NCBI RefSeq assembly: GCF_006345805.1
Contig: NW_021836491.1
Coordinates: 1-24,143, forward strand
Length of the DNA: 24,143 nucleotides
Reading direction: 5' to 3'
From: Octopus sinensis
Taxonomy: Eukaryota
In this document: one piece after another, positions 2,491 to 23,118 of the stretch
Layout of the letters: every line of letters starts with the position of its first letter
Numbering within the stretch: position 1 is the first letter of the stretch
Translations under genes and position numbers: made by a program
The notes under the pieces: model-generated
What the model was told of the DNA's origin: nothing
Databases searched by the model: none
Seen by the model: only the letters and a program-made list of their open reading frames with translations

Positions 2491-2508
2491 AAATCCTCTC
2501 TTAGTACC

Positions 2509-2740
2509 TGTTTCTTTATTACCCACAAGGGGCTAAACACAGTGAGGTCAAACAAGGACAGACAAACGGATCAAGTCGATTACATCGACCCCAGTGCGTA
2601 ACTGATACTTAATTTATCGACCTCGAAAGGATGAAAGGCAAAGTCGACCTCGGCGGAATTTTGAACTCGGAACGTAACGGCAGACGAAATACGGCTACGC
2701 ATTTCGCCCAGCGTGCTAACGTTTCTGCTAGCTCGCCGCC
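2509..2740 (-). mobile_element. SINE B, full-length monomer
   Basis: Complete head-core-tail. Flanking direct repeat ctcttagtacc (2498-2508) / ctcctagtacc (2740-2750) is a TSD with one mismatch. Confidence 0.92.
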
Positions 2741-2917
2741 TCCTAGTACCATCGGCACGAGCCAATGAAGAAGTCTGTACGTGATTCCTAGACTTACTAG
2801 ATAAAGTAACTAAGTCTGTCTGTCTGTGTGTCTCTCTCTCTAATCAGATGCAACATATTTGCAGAAGACGCATTAGATCTTGTGGTTCTCGGTTTCTTGC
2901 ACATAGGTAACAAATAG

Positions 2918-2985
2918 GATGGTCACGGCTGGAGAGCCTTCGACTATAAGTCTGTTCAATCACCGTGGATCTGGTAGTAACAAAA
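2918..2985 (+). mobile_element. Retroposon 3'-end fragment (family D), copy 2
   Basis: ggatggtcacggctggagagccttcgactataagtctgttcaatca is similar to 2411-2490. Confidence 0.45.
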
Positions 2986-2999
2986 CCACCATCACTAAA

Positions 3000-3445
3000 C
3001 ACACAACCACCACCACCACCACCGTCACCCCCCAAAAAAACAACAACAACAACTACTACTCTACTACTACTACTACTACTACTAATAATAATAATAATAA
3101 TAATGATAATAATAATAATAATAATAATAATACTGTACCAGCCATAAGAGCACCACCACCACTAAGACAATCGTTACTACTACTACTACTACTACTACTA
3201 CTATAAGAGCCATAATCTCACCACCGCCACCACCACCACCAACACAATCGTTACTACTACTACTACTATCACTACTACTGCTGCTGCTACTACTACTACT
3301 ACTGCTGCTGCTACTACTACTACTACTGTAACAGCCATAAGAGCACTACCACAACTAAGACAATCGTTACTACTACTACTTCTACTACTACTACTGTAAC
3401 AGCCATAAGATCACCACCACAACAACACAATCGTTACTACTACTG

Positions 3446-3520: not shown

Positions 3521-4002
3521 TGTTGGTGTTAGAGGAATTAACTTGAACGCTGCTACCTGTTCGATTTAAAATTAGCTGCCAATTACAGTCTTTAAAAGAA
3601 AATTTGGAAGACACATTGGCTGAGGCGGTTGTGGAGAGAATGTCGCTGAATAAAAGTTGGGATGGTCACATCAGTAATGGAATTTCTATTTTTATAGAAT
3701 TTGTTGAATGGAGTTCAGTTCTAACTAAACAGCAAAACCATTTCCAACGAAGACAACAGAACCTGACAGCATTCAAGTGAATGCTCGCCATTTTACTGTC
3801 AGTAATCCAAATCGTTGACGGAGAAATGGTACACAATTACAAATACAAACGCAATTACAAATACAAATGCAGCGGAATGCATATAGGCACACGTACACAC
3901 ACGCACGCACAGACGCACACACACACACACACACAGACACATATATACACACACACGCACATGTACACATATACGCACACATACTCACACACGCACACTT
4001 AT

Positions 4003-5217
4003 CTATTTCTTTACTGCCCATAAGGGGCTAAGCACAGAGGAGACAAACAAGGATAGACAAACGGATTAAGTTTGATTATATCGACCCCAGTGCATAACTG
4101 GTACTTATTTTATCGACCACGAAAGGATGAAAGGCAAAGTCGACCACGGCGGAATTTGAACTCAGAACGTAACGGCAGACGAAATACCTATTTCTTTACT
4201 GCCCACAAGGGGCTAAACACAGAGGGGACAAAAACAAGGACAGACAAACGGATAAGTCGATTATATCGCCCCAGTGCGTAACTGGTACTTATTTAATCGA
4301 CACCGAAGGATGAAAGGCAAAGTCGACCTCGGCGGAATTTGAACTCAGAACGTAACGGCAGACGAAATACCTATTTCTTTACTGCCCACAAGGGGCTAAA
4401 TACAGAGGGGACAAACAAGGACAGACAAACGGATTAAGTCGATTATATCGACCCCAGTGCGTAACTGGTACTTATTTAATCGACCCCGAAAGGATGAAAG
4501 GCAAAGTCGACCTCGGCGGAATTTGAACTCAGAATGTAAAGACAGACGGAATACCTATTTCTTTACAAGCAGATCACAGTGCACAACATACAGCACCCTA
4601 AAAGCAATAAGTCGATTATATCGACCCCAGTGCGTAACTGGTACATATTTAATCGACCCCGAAAGGATGAAAGGCAAAGTCGACCTCGGCGGAATTTGAA
4701 CTCAGAACGTAACGGCAGACGAAATACGGCTACGCATTTCGCCCGGCGAGCTAACGTTTCTTATTTCTTTACTGCCCACAAGGGGCTAAACACACAGGGC
4801 ATAAACAAGGACAGACAGACAAAGGGATTAAGTCGATTATATCGACCACCCTGCGTAACTGGTACTTAATTAATCGACTCCGAAAGGATGAAAGGCAAAA
4901 TCGACCTCGGCAGAATTTGAACTCAGAACGTAACGGCAGACGAAATACGGCTACGCATTTCGCCCGGCGAGCTAACGTTTCTTATTTCTTTACTGCCCAC
5001 AAGGGGCTAAACACACAGGGCATAAACAAGGACAGACAGACAAAGGGATTAAGTCGATTATATCGACCACCCTGCGTAACTGGTACTTAATTAATCGACT
5101 CCGAAAGGATGAAAGGCAAAATCGACCTCGGCAGAATTTGAACTCAGAACGTAACGGCAGACGAAATACGGCTACGCATTTCGCCAGGCGTGCTAACGTT
5201 TCTGCCAGCTCGTCGCC
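4003..5217 (-). mobile_element. Head-to-tail array of six SINE B units; only the rightmost has a complete head
   Basis: Units start at 4003, 4188, 4372, 4555, 4761 and 4982. A perfect 15-bp direct repeat CACACGCACACTTAT lies at 3988-4002 and 5221-5235. Confidence 0.95.
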
Positions 5218-5402
5218 TTTCACACGCACACTTATATGCACAAGCATACGTAGTCATATACAGACAAAACAGGATTTAAGTAGGAACATCTTTCATTCTA
5301 TGCCTTTCAGGCATGTACAAGTATTTACGTACGTATGTATTTACGCATGCGTATATGTATAGGTATATTTTTTTATATTTATAGAAATGTATATAAAGAC
5401 GT

Positions 5403-5815
5403 AGGAGTGGCTGTGTGGTAAGTAGCTTGCTTACGAACCACATGGTTCCGGGTTCAGTCCCACTGCGTGGCACCTTGGGCAAGTGTCTTCTACTATAGCC
5501 TCGGGCCGACCAAAGCCTTGAGTGGATTTGGTAGACGGAAACTGAAAGAAGCGCGTCGTATATATGTATATATATGTGTGTGTATGTGTATATGTTTGTG
5601 TGTCTGTGTTTGTCCCTCCCCAACATCGCTTGACAACCAATGCTGGTATGTTTACGTCCCCGTAACTTAGCGGTTCGGCAAAAGAGACCGATAGAATATG
5701 TACTAGGTTTACAAAAAATAAGTCCTGGAGTCGATTTGCTCGACAAAAAAGGTGGTGCTCCAGCATGGCCACAGTCAAACGACTGAAACAAGTAAAAAAG
5801 TAAAGAATAAAGAGT
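5403..5815 (+). mobile_element. SINE A (tRNA head, CORE-like segment, internal TA/TG microsatellite, (GTAAAAGA)-type tail), full length
   Basis: Head aggagtggctgtgtggtaag with B-box-like gggttcagtccc, and the CORE-SINE-like motif accttgggcaagtgtctt. Many near-identical copies occur in the window. Octopus OR-type SINEs are the likely known equivalents (not verified). Confidence 0.92.
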
Positions 5816-6716: not shown

Positions 6717-6875
6717 TCGTCATCATCATCATCATCACCATCATCATCATCAACATCATCATCAGCAGCAGCATCATCAGCATCGTCACCATCATTGTCG
6801 TCGTCATCGTCATTATCATCATCATCGTCGTCATCATCATCTTCGTCAACATCATCATCATCATCATCACCTTGG

Positions 6876-6912
<37 letters not shown>

Positions 6913-6940
6913 AAGCAAGGTCATTGTTATCATTATCATT

Positions 6941-6971
<31 letters not shown>

Positions 6972-7470
6972 ACATCATCGTCACCAACATTATCATCATC
7001 ATCATCATCATCATCATCGTCGTCGTCGTCATCATCGTCATCATCATCATCATCATCGTCATTATTATCATCATCATCATCATCGTCATCATTATCAGCA
7101 TCATCATCATCGTCGTCGTCGTCGTCATCATCATCATCATCATTGGCATCATCTCAAATACAAATGCTAGCCCTTTCAAAACAAGCATAAACAATTTATA
7201 CACCATATGAAGAAAATTATCCGCCATCACCACCACCACCAGCACCACCACCACCAACAACAACAACAACAACACCGCCACCACCACCATCACCACACGA
7301 ACAAGAACAACAACAACAAGACAATACATCATCGACAAACCAAGAATACACAGCAAACACACACACACCACACACCCAAACACACACCCAAACACACACC
7401 CACACACACACTCCCTCTTTCACACATACACACCCACCCACACAGACACAAGCATACATATGGACATATA
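6717..7470. repeat. Degenerate (CAT)n tract, then (CAC/CAA)n and (CA)n
   Basis: Direct reading. It explains the poly-H, poly-S, poly-I and poly-M ORFs. Confidence 0.95.
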
Positions 7471-8667: not shown

Positions 8668-8813
8668 GTGGTGAGCTGGCAGAATCGTTAGCACACCGGG
8701 CGAAATGCTTAGCGGTATTTCGTCTGCCGTTTCGTTCTGTGTTCAAATTCCGCCGGGGTCGACTTTGCCTTTCATCCTTTCGGGATCGGTATATTAAGTA
8801 CCAGTTACGCGCT

Positions 8814-8815
<2 letters not shown>
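8668..8815 (+). mobile_element. SINE B, 3'-truncated at a (TA)n tract
   Basis: Head and core are present up to gtaccagttacgcgctgg. Confidence 0.88.
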
Positions 8816-9654: not shown

Positions 9655-9686
<32 letters not shown>

Positions 9687-10310
9687 GTGATGGTGATGGT
9701 GGTGGATGTGGTGGTGTTGGTGGTGGTGGTGGTGGTTGTGGTGATTGCGGTTGTGGTCCTGGTGGTAGTGGTGGTATTGGTGGTTGTGGTTGTGGTCCTG
9801 GTGGTGGTGGTGGTGGTGGTGGTATTGGTGGTTGTGCTTGTGGTTGTGGTGGTGGTGGAGGTGGTGGTGGTTGTGGTGGTGGTGTTGGTATTGGTGGTGG
9901 TGGTTGTGGTGATTGTGGTTGTGGTGGTGATGGTGGTTGTGGTTGTGGTCCTGGTGGTGGTGGTGGTGGTATTGGTGGTTGTGCTTGTGGTTGTGGTGGT
10001 GGTGGAGGTGGTGGTGGTGGTTGTGGTGGTGGTGTTGGTATTGGTGGTGGTGGTGGTTGTGGTGATAGTGGTTGTGGTGGTGATGGTGGTATTGGTGGTT
10101 GTGGTTGTGGTGGTGATGGTGATGGTCGTGGTGGTTGTGGTGGTGGTGGTTGTGGTGGTGGTATTGGTGGTTGTAGTGGTAATAGTGGTGGTGGTGGTGG
10201 TTGTGGTTGTGGTGGTGATGTGATGGTGGTGTTGGATGGTTGTAGTAGTGGTGGTGGTGATGCTGATGGTGGTGGTGGTGGTAGTGGTAGTGGTGGTTGT
10301 GGTGATATTG
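9655..10310. repeat. Complex (GGT/TGT/GAT)n tract with an internal duplication
   Basis: Direct reading. The segment ggtcctggtggt..tgtgcttgtggt..ggtgttggtatt occurs twice (~9793-9910 and ~9945-10065). Confidence 0.93.
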
Positions 10311-10973: not shown

Positions 10974-12160
10974 ATGTTTCATTGATTAGACTACAGCCAT
11001 GCTGGAGCACCGTCCTGAGGAACTTTCAGTCGTATAAATCGATATCAGCACTCATTTTACCTTTTTTAAGAGCGGTACTTATTCTATCGGTCGCTTTTGC
11101 TGAACTGTTAAGTTATGGCAACGTAAACGCGCGTACGCTTGTTGTCAAGCGATGACGGGAATAAAATGCACACACACACACACACACACAACGTTAACGT
11201 TGAACTTCTTTCAGTTTTCGGTTACCAATCCATTGACAGGGCTTTGGTTGGTCCGAGGCTATAGTAGAAGACATTTGCCCCAGGTGCCACACTGTGTGAC
11301 TGAAACCCGATACCATGTGGTTGGGAAGCAAGCTTCTTACTTCTTATGTCTTTATTGCCCACAAGGGGCTAAACATAGAGGGGACAAACAAGGACAGACA
11401 AAGGGGTTAAGTCGATTATATCGACCTCAGTGCGTAACTGGTACTTATTTAATCGACCCCGAAAGCATGAAAGGCAAAGTCGACCTCGGCGGAATTTGAA
11501 CTCAGAACGTAGCGGCAGACGAAATACCTATTTCTTTACTACCCATAAGGGGCTAAGCACAGAGGGGACAAACAAGGACAGACAAAGGGGTTAAGTCGAT
11601 TATATCGACCTCAGTGCGTAACTGGTACTTATTTAATCGACCCGGAAAGCATGAAAGGCAAAGTCGACCTCGGCGGAATTTGAACTCAGAACGTAGCGGC
11701 AGACGAAATACCTATTTCTTTACTACCCACAAGGGGCTAAGCACAGAGGGGACAAACAAGGACAGACAAAGGGGTTAAGTCGATTATATCGACCTCAGTG
11801 CGTAACTGGTACTTATTTAATCGACCCCGAAAGCATGAAAGGTAAAGTCGACCTCGGCGGAATATGAACTCAGAACGTAGCGGCAGACGAAATACCTATT
11901 TCTTTACTATCCACAAGGGGCTAAACACAGAGGGGACAAACAAGGACAGACAAACGGATTAAGTCGATTACATCGACCCCATTACGTAACTGGTACTTAT
12001 TTAATCGATCCCGAAAGGATGAAAGACAAAGTCAACCTCGGCGGTTTTGAACTCAGAACGTAACGGTAGCCGAAATACCTGCTAAGCATTTCGTCCGGCG
12101 TGCTAACGTTTCTGGCAGCTCACCACTTCTTACTTCTTACCACTCAATCACGCATGCGCT
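10974..12160 (-). mobile_element. SINE A, diverged, split by the SINE B tetramer
   Basis: The body runs 10974-11340. The missing head end resumes after the array as cttcttaccactcaatcacgcatgcgc (~12133-12159). Confidence 0.8.
11347..12124 (-). mobile_element. Head-to-tail array of four SINE B units, period 184 bp
   Basis: Junctions lie at 11527/8, 11711/2 and 11895/6. The flanking direct repeat cttcttacttctta is at 11333-11346 and 12126-12139. Confidence 0.95.
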
Positions 12161-13600: not shown

Positions 13601-13621
13601 AAAAAAAATTAAATTATAAGC

Positions 13622-14040
13622 AGGAGTGGCTGTGTGGTAAGTAGCTTGCTTACCAACCACATGGTTCTGGGTTCTGGATTTAGTCCCACTGCGTGACACC
13701 TTGGGCAAGTATCTTCTACTAAAGCCTCGGACCGACCAAAGCCTTGTGAGTGGATTTGGTAGACGGAAACTGAAAGGAGCCCGTCGTATATATGTACATA
13801 TATATATGTGTGTGTGTGCGTGTGTGTGTTTGTGTTTGTCTACCCAACATCGCTTGACAACCGATGCTGGTGAGTTTACGTCCTCGTAACTTAACGGTTG
13901 GGCAAAAGAGATGCGATAGAATAAGTACTAGGCTTACAAAGAATAAGTCCCGGGGTCGATTTGCTCGACTAAAGGCGGTGCTGCAGCATGGCCGCAGTCA
14001 AATGACTGAAGCAAGTAAAAAAGTGAAAGAGTAAAAGAGT
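13622..14040 (+). mobile_element. SINE A, full length
   Basis: Complete head-to-tail match to 5403-5815. Confidence 0.93.
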
Positions 14041-16720: not shown

Positions 16721-16937
16721 TTATTTACTCATTTACTCATTTACTTGTTTCAGTCATTTGACTGCGGCCTTGCTGGAGCGCCGCCTTTAGTCGAGCACAT
16801 CGACCCCGGGACTTATTCCTTTGTAAGCCTAGTACTTATTCTATCGGTCTCTTTTGCCGAACCGCTAAGTGACGGCGACGTAAACACACCAGCATCGGTT
16901 GTCAAGCAATGCTAGGGGGACAAACATAGACACGCAA

Positions 16938-16986
<49 letters not shown>

Positions 16987-17183
16987 ACATACATATATAT
17001 ATATATATATATACATATATACGACAGGCTTCTTTCAAATTCCGTCTATCAAATCCACTCACAAGGCATTGGTCGGCCTGGGGCTATACCAAACCACATT
17101 GCCCAAGATGCCACGCAGTGGGACTGTACCCGAACCATGTGTGTTGGGTTAGCAAGCTACTTACCACACAGCCACTCCTGCGC
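16721..17183 (-). mobile_element. SINE A, full length (left arm of an inverted pair)
   Basis: Complete copy on the minus strand. Confidence 0.93.
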
Positions 17184-17200
17184 CTGATGTATATATATAT

Positions 17201-17614
17201 AGGTGTGGGCTGTGTGGTAAGTAGCTTGTGCTAACCCAAGGTGTCCCGGGTTCAGTCCCACTGCGTGGCATCTTGGGCAAGTGTCTTCTGCTATAGCCCC
17301 CGGGCCGACCAAGCCTTGTGAGTGGATTTGGTAGACGGAAGCTGAAAGAAGCCTGTCGTATATATGTATATATATATATGTGTGTACGTGTTTGTGTGTC
17401 TGTGTTTGTCCCCCTAGCATTGCTTGGCAACCGATGCTGGTATGTTTATGTCCCCGTTACTTAGCGGTTCGGCAAAAGAGACCGATAGAATAAGTACTGG
17501 GCTTACAAAGAATAAGTCCCGGGGTCGATTTGCTCGACTAAAGGCGGTGCTCCAGCATGGCCGCAGTCAATGACTGAAACAAGTAAAAGAGTAAAAGAAT
17601 AAAGAGTAAAGAGT
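17201..17614 (+). mobile_element. SINE A, full length (right arm of an inverted pair)
   Basis: Complete copy on the plus strand, 17 bp from the opposing head. Confidence 0.93.
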
Positions 17615-18907: not shown

Positions 18908-19311
18908 TCTTTTACTCTTTTACTTGTTTCAGTCATTTGACTGCGGCCATGCTGGAGCACCGCCTTTAGTCGAGCAACTCGACCCCGGGACTTAATCTTT
19001 GTAAGCTCAGTACTTATTCTATCGGTCTCTTTTTGCCGAACCGCTAATTGACGGGGACATAAACACACCAGCATCGGTTGTCAAGCAATGGTAGGGGGAC
19101 AAACACAGACACACAAACATACACGCACATACATATATATACATATATACGACAGGCTTCTTTCAGTTTCCGTCTACCAAATCCACTCACAAGGCATTGG
19201 TCGGCCCGGGGCTATAGCAGAAGACACTTGCCCAAGACGCCACGCAGTAGGACTGAACCCGGATCCATGTGGCTGGTTAGCAAGCTACTTACCACACAGC
19301 CACTCCTGCGC
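18905..19311 (-). mobile_element. SINE A, full length; a 15-bp piece of the head end is duplicated at ~19316-19330
   Basis: Complete copy, with agccactcctgcgc repeated. Confidence 0.93.
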
Positions 19312-19341
19312 ATATAGCCACTCCTGCGCCTATATTCATTT

Positions 19342-19564
19342 AGCTGGGCGAAACGTTAGCACGCCGGGCGAAATGTGTAGCGTATTTCGTCTGTCGTTAC
19401 GTTCTGAGTTCAAATTCTGCCGAGGTCGACTTTGCCTTTCATCCTTTCGGGGTCGATAAATTAAGTACCAGTTATGCACTGGGGTCGATGTAATCGACTT
19501 AATCCCTCTGTCTGTCCTTGTTTGTCCCCTCTGTGTTTAGCCCCTTGTGGGTAGTAAAGAAATA
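19342..19564 (+). mobile_element. SINE B monomer
   Basis: Perfect TSD tatattcattt at 19331-19341 and 19565-19575. Confidence 0.93.
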
Positions 19565-19572
19565 TATATTCA

Positions 19573-19610
<38 letters not shown>

Positions 19611-19879: not shown

Positions 19880-20735
19880 GGGTGTGAGTGTGAGTGTGTG
19901 TATATACATGCATATACATATATATATGTCATTCTATCAATCTATCTGACAGTCTGTCAGTTTGTCTCACTATGTATGTATGTATGTATGTATGTATGTA
20001 TGTATGCATGCATGTATGTATGTATGCATGCATGTATGTATGTATGCATGCATGTATGTATGTATGCATGCATGTATGTATGTATGTATGTATGTATGTA
20101 TGCATGTATGTATGTATGTATGTATGTATGTATGTATGTATGCATGCATGTATGTATGTATGCATGCATGTATGTATGTATGTATGTATGTATGTATGCA
20201 TGCATGTATGTATGTATGCATGCATGTATGTATGTATGTATGTATGTATGTATGTATGTATGTATGTATGTATCAATCTTGCTATCTATCTGTCTGTCAG
20301 TCTGTCTAGCTAGCTACATATTTATATACGTGTGTGTGTATATTATGCATGTACATACATGCATACATACATTCATACATACATGCATACATACACGCAG
20401 GCATATATACGCACACGCATACATGCACACATACACATACAAGCATATATACATATACATACATAAATACATACATACACACATACATACTTGCATGCTT
20501 ACACACATATACATATACATACATACACGCACATACATACACAAATACATACATATATACATACATTCATACATACACATATATCCATACATACACACAT
20601 CCATACACGCATATATACATACATACACATATATATATAACATACATACACACATATATACATACATACATATATACATACATACACACACATATACATA
20701 CGTACATACATATATACATACATACACACACATAT
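19880..20735. repeat. (TATG/CATG)n followed by (CATA/CA)n tetranucleotide tracts
   Basis: Direct reading. It explains the MYVC and HTYI ORFs. Confidence 0.95.
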
Positions 20736-20806: not shown

Positions 20807-20842
20807 ACATATATTCACACATATATATATACACATATAAAA

Positions 20843-21073
20843 GGCGGCTAGCTGGCAGAAACGTTAGCACGCCGGGCGAAACCTGCGTAGCCGTATTTCG
20901 TCTGTCGTTACGTTCCGAGTTCAAATTCCGCCGAGGTCGACTTTGCCTTCATCCTTCGGGGTCGAATAAATTAAGTACCAGTTACGCACTGGAGGTCGTG
21001 TAATCGACTTAATCCCCTTGTCTTCCTTGTTCGTCTCCCCTCTATGTTTAGCCCCTTGTGGGCAATAAAGAAA
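20843..21073 (+). mobile_element. SINE B monomer, full length
   Basis: Runs from ggcggctagctggcagaaacgttagc to gcaataaagaaata. Confidence 0.93.
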
Positions 21074-21320
21074 TATATATACTACAACATACATGCATAT
21101 AAATTTCATACATGCACACATGCATACATACATAGATATATACATAAACACGTACATATATACATAATGAACAGCTGTGTCTATGAGATTTCCTATATAT
21201 CAGCCTGTATATCCTCGCTTGTGTATGTTCATATCTTTTTGCATCTGTCTGTATATGAGCCCTTTTACAAAGTTTTGTTAGTACAGATGTGCATTCATGT
21301 ATGTACATAAAAGTATGTGC

Positions 21321-21414
<94 letters not shown>

Positions 21415-21477
21415 ATATGTATCTATATACATGTGTAATGTACATATGCGTGTGTGAACGGATGTTTCGCCTGATAT

Positions 21478-21519
<42 letters not shown>

Positions 21520-21607
21520 TATGATATTATTATTATTATTATTATTATCATCATTATTATTAATATTATCATTATCATTATCATCATCATCATTATTATT
21601 ATTATTA

Positions 21608-21641
<34 letters not shown>

Positions 21642-21652
21642 CATTATTATTA

Positions 21653-21683
<31 letters not shown>

Positions 21684-21758
21684 CATTATTATTATTATTA
21701 TTATATTATTATTATTATTATTATTATTATTATCATTATTATTATTATTATTATTATC

Positions 21759-21802
<44 letters not shown>

Positions 21803-21843
21803 CATCATCATTATTATTATTATTATTATCATCATCATCATCA

Positions 21844-21880
<37 letters not shown>

Positions 21881-21921
21881 CATCATCATTATTATTATTA
21901 TTATTATTATCATCATCATCA

Positions 21922-21971
<50 letters not shown>

Positions 21972-22660: not shown

Positions 22661-22915
22661 CATTTATAAGTAAGTCGCCATGTCAGACGAAAAACTTTTC
22701 GTTAGCAACATCGGACTAATTAATTGCTTTACATTATTTAACATCTTAAACGTTGTCTAGGGTTTCAGATCAGTTTATGTTACCATGAACCAGTACGCAG
22801 TAATATATCTATTGTTAATAACTGCACGTATGGTATTCCGTATCGTATACTACGTTTGACATTCAATATCTCAACCTTTGTATAATACTCCGCATCTAAT
22901 GTTAAGCAAGCAAGA

Positions 22916-23118
22916 GGCGATGAGCTGGCAGAATCGTTATCGTGCGGATCGAAATCTGTAGCAGTATTTCGTCCGTCTTTACCATGGGTTCAAATTCTAT
23001 CAAGGTCGACTTTACTTTTCATCCTTTCGGGGTCGATAACATATGTACCAGTTGATCACTGGGGTTGATGTAATAGACTTAATTTCTCCCCCGAAATTGT
23101 TCTCCCTGTACTAAAATC
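22916..23118 (+). mobile_element. SINE B', diverged
   Basis: B head and core, then the tail ctcccccgaaattgttctccctgtactaaaat, which is unlike the B tail. Confidence 0.8.

Follow-up and report, generated by a model that had tools for sequence, protein, structure and literature searches.

The window analyzed here is the complete 24-kb scaffold NW_021836491.1 (24,143 nt) of the 2.72-Gb, 13,516-contig assembly of Octopus sinensis (GCF_006345805.1), and at 3988-5235 it carries six head-to-tail units of a short interspersed element (SINE) enclosed by one 15-bp target site duplication (TSD). We propose, with a probability of roughly 0.6, that this array arose by serial, microhomology-guided template switching within a single event of target-primed reverse transcription (TPRT) and was later expanded by one unit. 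What carries this reading is a correspondence between the 3′ ends of SINE units and the internal sites at which the following units begin, together with arrays of mixed composition among the sampled loci and a piece of foreign flank inside unit 4.

Anatomy of the array and of its SINE

The six units lie on the minus strand (4003-5220) and abut one another with no spacer and no internal TSD (Table 1). Only the 5′-most, unit 6, starts at consensus position 1 and has a full head; units 5 and 4 start at position 17, with a junction between units 6 and 5 that reads AAATA/AGAAACG (slash, junction), and units 1 to 3 start at position 50. The TSD is exact on both sides (15/15), and its score of 15 compares with a maximum of 11 in shuffled flank pairings of 48 arrays. 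Its left copy is the end of an imperfect (CA)n tract; since the DNA to the right of 5235 is not CA-rich, the right copy of CACACGCACACTTAT is a true duplicate rather than microsatellite background. Units 5 and 6 are 99.1% identical (2 mismatches in 221), units 1 to 3 are mutually 91-94% identical, and unit 4 has a non-SINE 3′ part. The initial annotation had described six non-clonal units inside a perfect 15-bp TSD, with none between units and with a full head on the 5′-most alone, and unit delineation, alignment and TSD scoring bear out each of these features. Tandem Repeats Finder calls the block as 183-bp and 221-bp arrays.

Table 1. Coordinates of the SINE arrays and of a reference monomer in the window.
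Feature	Position	Strand	Description
TSD copy beside the element's 3′ end	3988-4002	.	CACACGCACACTTAT on +; exact 15-mer, identical to 5221-5235
Unit 1	4003-4187 (185 bp)	-	Consensus 50-234; 3′-terminal unit; tail ...GGGCAGTAAAGAAATAG abuts TSD
Unit 2	4188-4371 (184 bp)	-	Consensus 50-234; junction to unit 1 AAATA/GGTATTTCG
Unit 3	4372-4554 (183 bp)	-	Consensus 50-234; junction to unit 2 AAATAG/GTATTTCG
Unit 4, whole	4555-4760 (206 bp)	-	Starts at position 17
Unit 4, bare 12-nt SINE tail GTAAAGAAATAG	4555-4566	-	3′ end of unit 4; unit 3 joined on at position 50
Unit 4, foreign tail (43 nt)	4567-4609	-	Equals 3′ end, TSD and flank of the four-unit array at G000:C5431
Unit 4, body	4610-4760	-	Consensus 17 to ~176; mosaic
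Unit 5	4761-4981 (221 bp)	-	Consensus 17-234; hybrid
Unit 6	4982-5220 (239 bp)	-	Full length, 1-234, plus one or two A at 5′ end
TSD copy beside the element's 5′ end	5221-5235	.	Exact 15-mer
Second array	11333-12137	-	Four units, 11345-12125; 12-bp TSD CTTCTTACTTCT on + at 11333-11344 and 12126-12137
Reference monomer	19331-19575	+	SINE 19342-19564, from position 10; 11-bp TSD TATATTCATTT at 19331-19341 and 19565-19575

The consensus of this SINE, built from 40 junction-bearing loci, is 234 nt long and has no poly-A tail, and its tail words occur tens of thousands of times across contigs; in length (80-500 bp being the usual range), copy number and dispersal it agrees with a SINE. Monomers are flanked by TSDs of 11-15 bp and arrays by TSDs of 8-19 bp, plus one anomalous 23-bp repeat described below. 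Two subfamilies are told apart by their tails, named here TAG (...GGGTAGTAAAGAAATA) and CAA (...GGGCAATAAAGAAATA), the latter ending in (AAGAAAT)n repeats. A sibling SINE has positions 1-168 in common with these B-type units and a different tail (...CCTAGAGTAGAAAAGAATAT, also ...AAAAGAAT). The initial annotation had spoken of a tRNA head; the full head of unit 6 stands, but ARAGORN finds no tRNA in it, and over 3900-5400 Rfam gives no match to tRNA, 5S or 7SL at E ≤ 1. Inspection by eye alone shows motifs that resemble a B box (GAGTTCAAATTCC) and an A box (TGGCAGAAACG). Rfam matches to mir-297 at 3942-4006 and 5315-5383 (30.5 bits versus a gathering score of 90) lie in CA/TA-rich low-complexity flanks and are almost certainly artefacts of composition. 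No partner long interspersed element (LINE) was found in a 270-kb sample, and the tail-only fragments and tail words outside SINEs were not LINE-like.

Tail extensions match the internal sites of joining

Downstream units begin at two internal sites, GGTATTT at positions 50-56 and AGAAAC at positions 17-22, and the two subfamilies differ in the short extensions that follow their tails. TAG ends without a next unit continue, among the matches listed, with GG (40%), GGT (37%), GGTA (31%), GGTAT (23%) and GGTATT (12%); CAA ends without a next unit continue, again among the matches listed, with AGA (37%), AGAA (30%), AGAAA (19%) and AGAAAT (11%). Fisher's exact test on the contrast between TAG and CAA gives p = 1.7e-11. 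Since tail type was assigned from sequence 12 nt upstream, the extensions are part of the element rather than of the target. The TAG extension GGTATT equals positions 50-56 and the CAA extension AGAAA equals positions 17-21, and the sampled junctions pair up in the same way: 82 of 85 at position 50 are preceded by T221 tails, and 8 of 9 at position 17 by C221 tails. Sibling tails are followed by a next unit in 1 of 100 among the matches listed, and the junction overlaps by AGAAT with the head variant CAGAATCG. Microhomology was found at all three junction matches, GGTATT(T), AGAAA and AGAAT, and junction frequency grows with the length of the match, from ~1-3% at 5 nt to ~48% at 7 nt. Percentages taken from lists of 100 sites are approximate, and these lists include clustered sites.

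The junctions themselves are clean. Among ~100 position-50 junctions, 89 read AAGAAATA/GGTATTTC exactly. When 100 position-50 sites were listed, the preceding sequence was the unit's own head in 51, a SINE tail in 48 and flank in 1, and position 50 is for that reason a switch point rather than a fall-off point. Genome-wide, TAG tails are internal to arrays about half of the time (25,582 junctions versus at least 16,421 non-junction ends), and CAA tails in about 2-4% of cases. The TSDs of TAG-type insertions often start with GGTA, which is present in the 5′ TSD copy also, and ordinary target priming seems to use the same few base pairs as the joining of units.

Two departures from the common junction were seen. 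In ~3-5% of junctions the tail word is duplicated, as AAATAGAAATAG/GTATTTCG (e.g. G000:C1:12577116, 13586055, 15943113 and 15943303), which fits slippage or an alternative register when the enzyme engages the tail. At locus L031 (G000:C1:14309100-14315300, ~3340-3370), a TAG-type tail and its extension (AAATAGGCATTA) run straight into a full-length unit at position 1, so that here the extension is present without a following position-50 sequence; the join resembles an end-to-end jump in which the enzyme left one template at its 5′ end and took up another at its 3′ end.

Arrays recur genome-wide, as a rule within one TSD

A 26-mer spanning the position-50 junction occurs 14,555 times in the assembly, the junction word that includes the TAG tail (GGTAGTAAAGAAATAGGTATTTCG) 25,582 times and the position-17 junction 687 times. 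For closer analysis we sampled 40 junction-bearing loci within the initial 16 Mb of one chromosome and added the window; together they contain ~50 arrays of 2-10 units. Most begin at positions 1-4, with later units at 50 or 17, and their sizes, corrected for ascertainment, are roughly geometric with p ~0.48 (2 units, 0.66; 3 units, 0.18; 4 units, 0.12) and a fat tail. Thousands of loci with their own TSDs and diverged units rule out an assembly artefact. A whole-assembly search with the window's unique left flank (3540-3890) matched only itself, giving no haplotig partner and no allelic or empty-site copy of the locus, and the array junction had 0 matches in metagenome contigs.

The initial annotation had suggested counting the arrays that have a single flanking TSD. 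By this count 19 of 48 sampled arrays (chance expectation, 0.5) have a TSD that scores beyond the 99th percentile of shuffled flank pairs, and among arrays with an intact 3′ end the figure is 18 of 37. Arrays with a significant TSD range from 2 to 9 units, with 7-unit and 9-unit arrays among them, and five or six of them end in a different SINE. A single TSD alone is no proof that a multimer arrived in one event, as tandem duplication after insertion keeps one TSD too.

It does exclude successive insertions, in which 5′-truncated copies would land one after another exactly at the 3′ end of a resident copy, with the tail as preferred target; to this reading we give almost no credence. A preference for targets that resemble the SINE's own 3′ end, with TSDs starting in GGTA or AGAA, and the presence of two arrays at the same site of another SINE are in its favor. 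Yet one TSD brackets the entire block, no TSD or copy of flank stands between units at any junction inspected, 89 of ~100 position-50 junctions are exact with no intervening sequence, and truncation at exactly position 50 would be needed each time, when ~1% of position-50 sites adjoin non-SINE flank.

The two arrays just mentioned are the second array of the window, which sits in a copy of a different abundant repeat of ~400 bp (another SINE) at ...GTGGTAAGAAG/CTTGCTTCCC, and a 9-unit array at L037, which lies at the corresponding site in a further copy of the repeat (TSD AAGAAGCTT). Together they suggest a target preference for AAGAAG-like sequence resembling the SINE's own tail. Unusual ends were seen at three further loci. 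At L030 (G000:C1:14185700-14191700, ~2748-3054) the last unit stops at consensus 96 and the array is flanked by a perfect 23-bp direct repeat, TGGGTGAGCTATCGATGCACACA, which is longer than any other TSD seen and implies initiation inside a unit or a different process of duplication. At L039 (G000:C1:15889500-15895500, ~2540-2575) 14 extra bases (ccatttctgtggtg) stand between a 19-bp TSD and the SINE 5′ end; in part they repeat the start of the TSD in reverse complement (agaaatgg), resembling a small inverted fill-in at the 5′ junction. At L018 (G000:C1:11890500-11896500, ~2979-3050) the second unit of a dimer stops at 91 and abuts an inverted SINE head (35 to 1), either a twin-priming-like 5′-inversion or a nested insertion in the opposite orientation.

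Arrays are heteromeric, and small ones are star-like

About half of the sampled arrays are heteromeric at their terminal unit. Seventeen end in a unit of the sibling SINE, joined at 50 or 17 to upstream B-type units, and among 18 arrays with a B-type end, ten have a non-TAG terminal unit behind upstream units that are all TAG. Locus L012, for example, consists of nine TAG units and one CAA unit, and the second array of the window of three TAG-tail units, the 5′-most starting at position 6, and a terminal CAA-tail unit. TAG tails account for 87 of 109 units that have a following unit and for 11 of 29 terminal units and monomers (p = 3.9e-5), and 34 architectures were counted among 49 arrays. 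In-place duplication of one inserted element is ruled out as the origin of these arrays, because the terminal unit belongs to a different subfamily or to the sibling SINE. Mapping a crossover inside the sibling-terminated last units was given up, the B and sibling consensus sequences being identical over 50-104, which leaves no power.

The mean distance between units is 0.070 within arrays and 0.106 between arrays. Dimers to tetramers are star-like: units of one array are about twice as far from each other as from the consensus, and they share no private changes. In arrays of 7-10 units the smallest pairwise distance is 0.000 and the largest 0.08-0.19, and identical pairs beside pairs diverged by 8-19% indicate that large arrays probably underwent later local exchange. 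Such neighbors, and the hybrid unit 5 described below, are what unequal exchange of the satellite kind leaves behind; they bear on later growth, not on origin. Among ~48 arrays, a sample of low power for this purpose, no unit haplotypes closer than 3.4% were found between arrays that would point to shared masters.

Units 4, 5 and 6 record a transferred flank and one crossover

The foreign tail of unit 4 has a traceable source. A 26-mer from it occurs at two places only in the assembly, the window and contig C5431 (G000:C5431), and the piece is identical over 43/43 nt to the 3′ flank of a four-unit array at C5431, although its last 4 nt (TATT) are assignable to either junction partner. At C5431 the piece lies directly 3′ of the array and starts with that array's TSD, TTGCTTTT(A)GG, which is also found upstream of the array; in the window it lies between the body of unit 4, which ends at ~176, and the bare 12-nt tail joined to unit 3. 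A template carrying the C5431 flank therefore contributed to the window array. The C5431 locus was rejected as an allele of the window, since SINEs, at 78-91% identity, are all that links its flanks to the window; C5431 is a separate locus, and its flank was the one copied. The 26-mer search found no source master with the structure of unit 4 in the assembly.

In the alignment, unit 4 is identical to unit 5 over columns 19-87, where it is of the same type as unit 6, and the remainder of unit 4 is of consensus type. Unit 5 equals unit 6 from column 36 to the end, and the sole two differences between them (columns 30 and 35) carry the states of unit 4. Because both differences match unit 4, unit 5 is the exact recombinant of one unequal crossover between units 6 and 4, being like unit 4 at its 5′ end and like unit 6 from column 88 on. 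The array thus appears from the alignment to have been born with five units (6-4-3-2-1, 5′ to 3′), and one later unequal crossover to have added the hybrid unit 5. The initial annotation had offered a later local duplication of units 5 and 6 as a possibility, and this event gives the suggestion a sharper form. Units 6 and 4 share 70 nt with one change per lineage, which, together with the perfect TSD (15/15) and the perfect transferred piece (43/43), argues that the window array is young. If so, there is a weak case that the 6-14 differences among units 1 to 3 mostly predate insertion, these counts being small.

Proposed mechanism and its alternatives

Under template switching, TPRT would start on one SINE RNA at the target nick, making unit 1 the first unit to be reverse-transcribed. 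At internal position 50 the 3′ end of the cDNA would be complementary to the 3′-terminal GGUAUU of another TAG-tail SINE RNA; the enzyme would switch to the 3′ end of that RNA and copy it, and the cycle would repeat until one template was copied to its 5′ end, as in unit 6. A second, rarer switch would join position 17 (AGAAAC) with the tail repeat ...AAATAAGAAAT of another subfamily. The internal site would in this way mimic nicked target priming on the SINE 3′ end, guided by 5-7 nt of complementarity, with unequal exchange following afterwards. Templates of the window array would have been heterogeneous, one of them with 39-43 nt of the 3′ flank of the C5431 array. The whole multimer of this ~234-nt, putatively LINE-dependent SINE would have been laid down in one TPRT event, hence the single 15-bp TSD. 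We infer that the step took place at the RNA level, with the reverse transcriptase making junctions on RNA anew at each insertion. Any SINE RNA could then serve as first template, a matching 3′ end being required only of later ones, and the heteromeric pattern is what such a rule predicts. If switching is true, monomer-length RNAs would end in ...AAAUAGGUAUU(U) or ...AAAUAAGAAAU.

A broader claim, which we hold at somewhat less than even odds, is that the SINE family is self-concatenating: an identity of 5-7 nt between the 3′ end and an internal site would make the cDNA a pseudo-target, so that about every second pass adds a unit, and at the main site this identity would be placed at the apex of a predicted hairpin. 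The minimum-free-energy structure predicted for the consensus contains a 13-bp hairpin with a 4-nt loop, formed by positions 33-45 and 50-62, and position 50 is the loop-side end of its 3′ arm.

Several observations weigh against this account. The z-score of the whole-SINE fold is weak (-1.6) and position 17 is not at a hairpin apex, for which reasons structure is at most a helper. The 48% junction frequency comes from 100 listed sites on one chromosome arm, some in the same arrays. The GGTATT by which TAG ends are extended could be what is left of a following unit in a multimeric source; the arrays would then have given rise to the microhomology, not the reverse. Runs of four or more T are absent from the consensus unit, and RNA polymerase III (Pol III) could therefore read through an array, making multimeric transcripts possible. 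Several arrays end in 3′-truncated units, which plain TPRT from a canonical tail does not predict. In the window array itself, the 12-nt tail between the transferred flank and unit 3 needs three switches within ~55 nt, with no clear microhomology.

Some of these points lead to a multimeric master as the explanation. Long Pol III read-through RNAs of source arrays would be copied whole, from a junction that arose once or a few times and was inherited, and the number of units would vary with the internal tail at which the enzyme begins, or through in-register slippage from repeat to repeat. We regard this explanation as unlikely, although it is the main rival: in addition to the missing T4 terminator and the position of TAG tails inside arrays about half of the time, more than 25,000 sites carry a near-identical junction, some arrays stop partway through a further unit (50-77, 50-91 or 50-96) as if template RNAs ended mid-unit, and the C5431 piece shows that a read-through or flank-containing template existed. 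It would, however, require a separate master for each combination (n TAG units followed by a CAA, sibling or TAG end, n from 1 to 9, with mixed junctions at 17 and 50), given the diversity of architectures counted above, and it makes no prediction that three tail types should each join at the site matching their own 3′ extension. Sampled arrays share no close unit haplotypes, the nearest distance being at least 3.4%, and the assembly contains no master with the structure of unit 4. The first junctions, moreover, would still require a template switch. The two models may also combine, with arrays as the source of monomer RNAs that extend a few bases into the following unit. The initial annotation had left a multimeric transcript and repeated jumping side by side; the evidence leans towards jumping.

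Expansion after insertion, in which a monomer would have been enlarged in place by unequal crossing-over or by tandem duplication through microhomology (GGTATT, present both at 50 and at the 3′ end), keeps a single TSD and accords with the lower mean distance within arrays than between them. Arrays of 7-10 units hold identical pairs beside pairs differing by up to 10-19%, and unit 5 is demonstrably a crossover hybrid. As an origin of the arrays this explanation is nevertheless improbable. It cannot yield terminal units of a different subfamily or of the sibling SINE, which are found in about half of the arrays and in several with clear TSDs, nor can it put the flank of another locus inside unit 4; dimers and trimers are star-like with no shared private variants; and microhomology of 6-7 bp at a spacing of 184 bp is not likely to have turned some half of the TAG copies into arrays. 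In-place exchange accounts for later growth, as in unit 5 and the fat tail of array sizes, and not for origin. Rolling-circle copying of a circular 50-234 RNA was rejected, since it does not fit the full head at the start of most arrays, nor the different unit type at their end. Serial template switching in one event thus remains our preferred reading, and the proposal of the initial annotation that the multimer came in one event rather than by successive insertions draws support from genome-wide recurrence, heteromeric terminal units, star-like small arrays and the flank within unit 4.

Relation to known systems

The end-to-end template jumping of the R2 reverse transcriptase is said to have been described by Bibillo and Eickbush in 2004, and chimeric retrogenes made by L1 were reportedly described by Buzdin et al. 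in 2003; both works are among those cited in PMC3414825. Such template-jump chimeras of non-LTR elements are like the octopus arrays in that one cDNA is made from serial RNAs within a single TSD, with the 5′ partner complete and the 3′ partners 5′-truncated. They differ in being rare and heterotypic (U6, mRNA, Alu) with scattered breakpoints, whereas the octopus arrays involve one SINE family and two fixed sites, tens of thousands of times. Internal tandem repeats inside one TSD are also known from SVA-type composites with an internal variable number tandem repeat and from the fixed dimeric SINEs Alu and Bov-A2. These are copied from masters that already hold the repeat; in octopus the repeated unit is the SINE itself, from an internal site to the true 3′ end, and the number and composition of units vary from locus to locus.

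A close likeness is to the HCD-SINEs of the blood clam Scapharca broughtonii, which form TSD1-(SINE)n-TSD1 multimers for which unequal recombination is the only cause offered (PMC11481361, Mob DNA 2024). In both molluscs a head-to-tail array lies in one TSD, with the head complete in the first unit and cut at one common position in later units, and with the tail complete in the last. In the clam, upstream units also lack part of the 3′ tail and arrays make up a few per cent of copies, whereas in octopus every unit keeps its full tail and roughly every second pass across the internal site gives a junction. Octopus differs further in that its junction sites match the upstream 3′ extension, and heteromeric arrays and a transferred flank point to a reverse-transcription step.

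In squamates, SINE-derived satellites have been reported in which the tandem unit is a portion of a SINE (PMC10702118, Mob DNA 2023). As in octopus, longer arrays are more uniform and unequal recombination is invoked, but those satellites occupy few loci, probably subtelomeric, and come without TSD analysis, whereas the octopus arrays are short (2-10 units), dispersed, TSD-bearing and number in the thousands. The octopus arrays may represent an earlier stage on a possible path from SINE to satellite. We found no published description of these arrays or of the rule that ties tails to internal sites, in a search outside of which lay most subscription journals, including the octopus SINE papers of the 1990s.

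It has long been asked how dispersed elements give rise to tandem repeats, and reports of SINE-derived satellites have offered no mechanism for them. In this genome the seeding step has apparently left thousands of records, in which junctions are clean, TSDs are present and template types can be identified, so that the frequency, site rules and partner choice of LINE reverse-transcriptase switching in vivo could be measured from genome sequence alone. If our reading is true, this genome would hold more than 25,000 natural, mapped template switches and would illustrate a route from a dispersed SINE to tandem, proto-satellite DNA that is seeded at retrotransposition and grown by unequal exchange. 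Transferred flanks such as that of unit 4 can be used for tracing active source loci. The arrays amount to at least 4.7 Mb (more than 25,000 junctions of ~184 bp each), and they confuse SINE copy counts, divergence-based ages, presence/absence markers and repeat libraries for this genome.

Other repeats in the window

The window contains ~17 SINE units of this superfamily. In addition to the arrays and the reference monomer, single copies lie at 2508-2741 (-) and 20841-21075 (+), and related sibling-type or partial copies at 95-257 (-, sibling tail), 8670-8815 (+) and 22915-23083 (+). A second abundant SINE-like family of ~400 bp, containing ...GGTAAGTAGCTTGCTTACGAACCACATGGTTCCGGGTTCAGTCC..., has at least 5 copies (5395-5811, 13620-14022, 16740-17185, 17208-17588 and 18918-19311), which are 78-92% identical to copies flanking the C5431 array. 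Long microsatellites occupy 257-585, 6720-7143, 9685-10304, 19971-20273, 20352-20730 and 21475-21971; their types are (TAA)110, (TCA)141, ~620 bp of (TGG)n, (TATG)76, (TACA)96 and (TAT)166. Together, microsatellites and SINEs leave little unique sequence in the scaffold.

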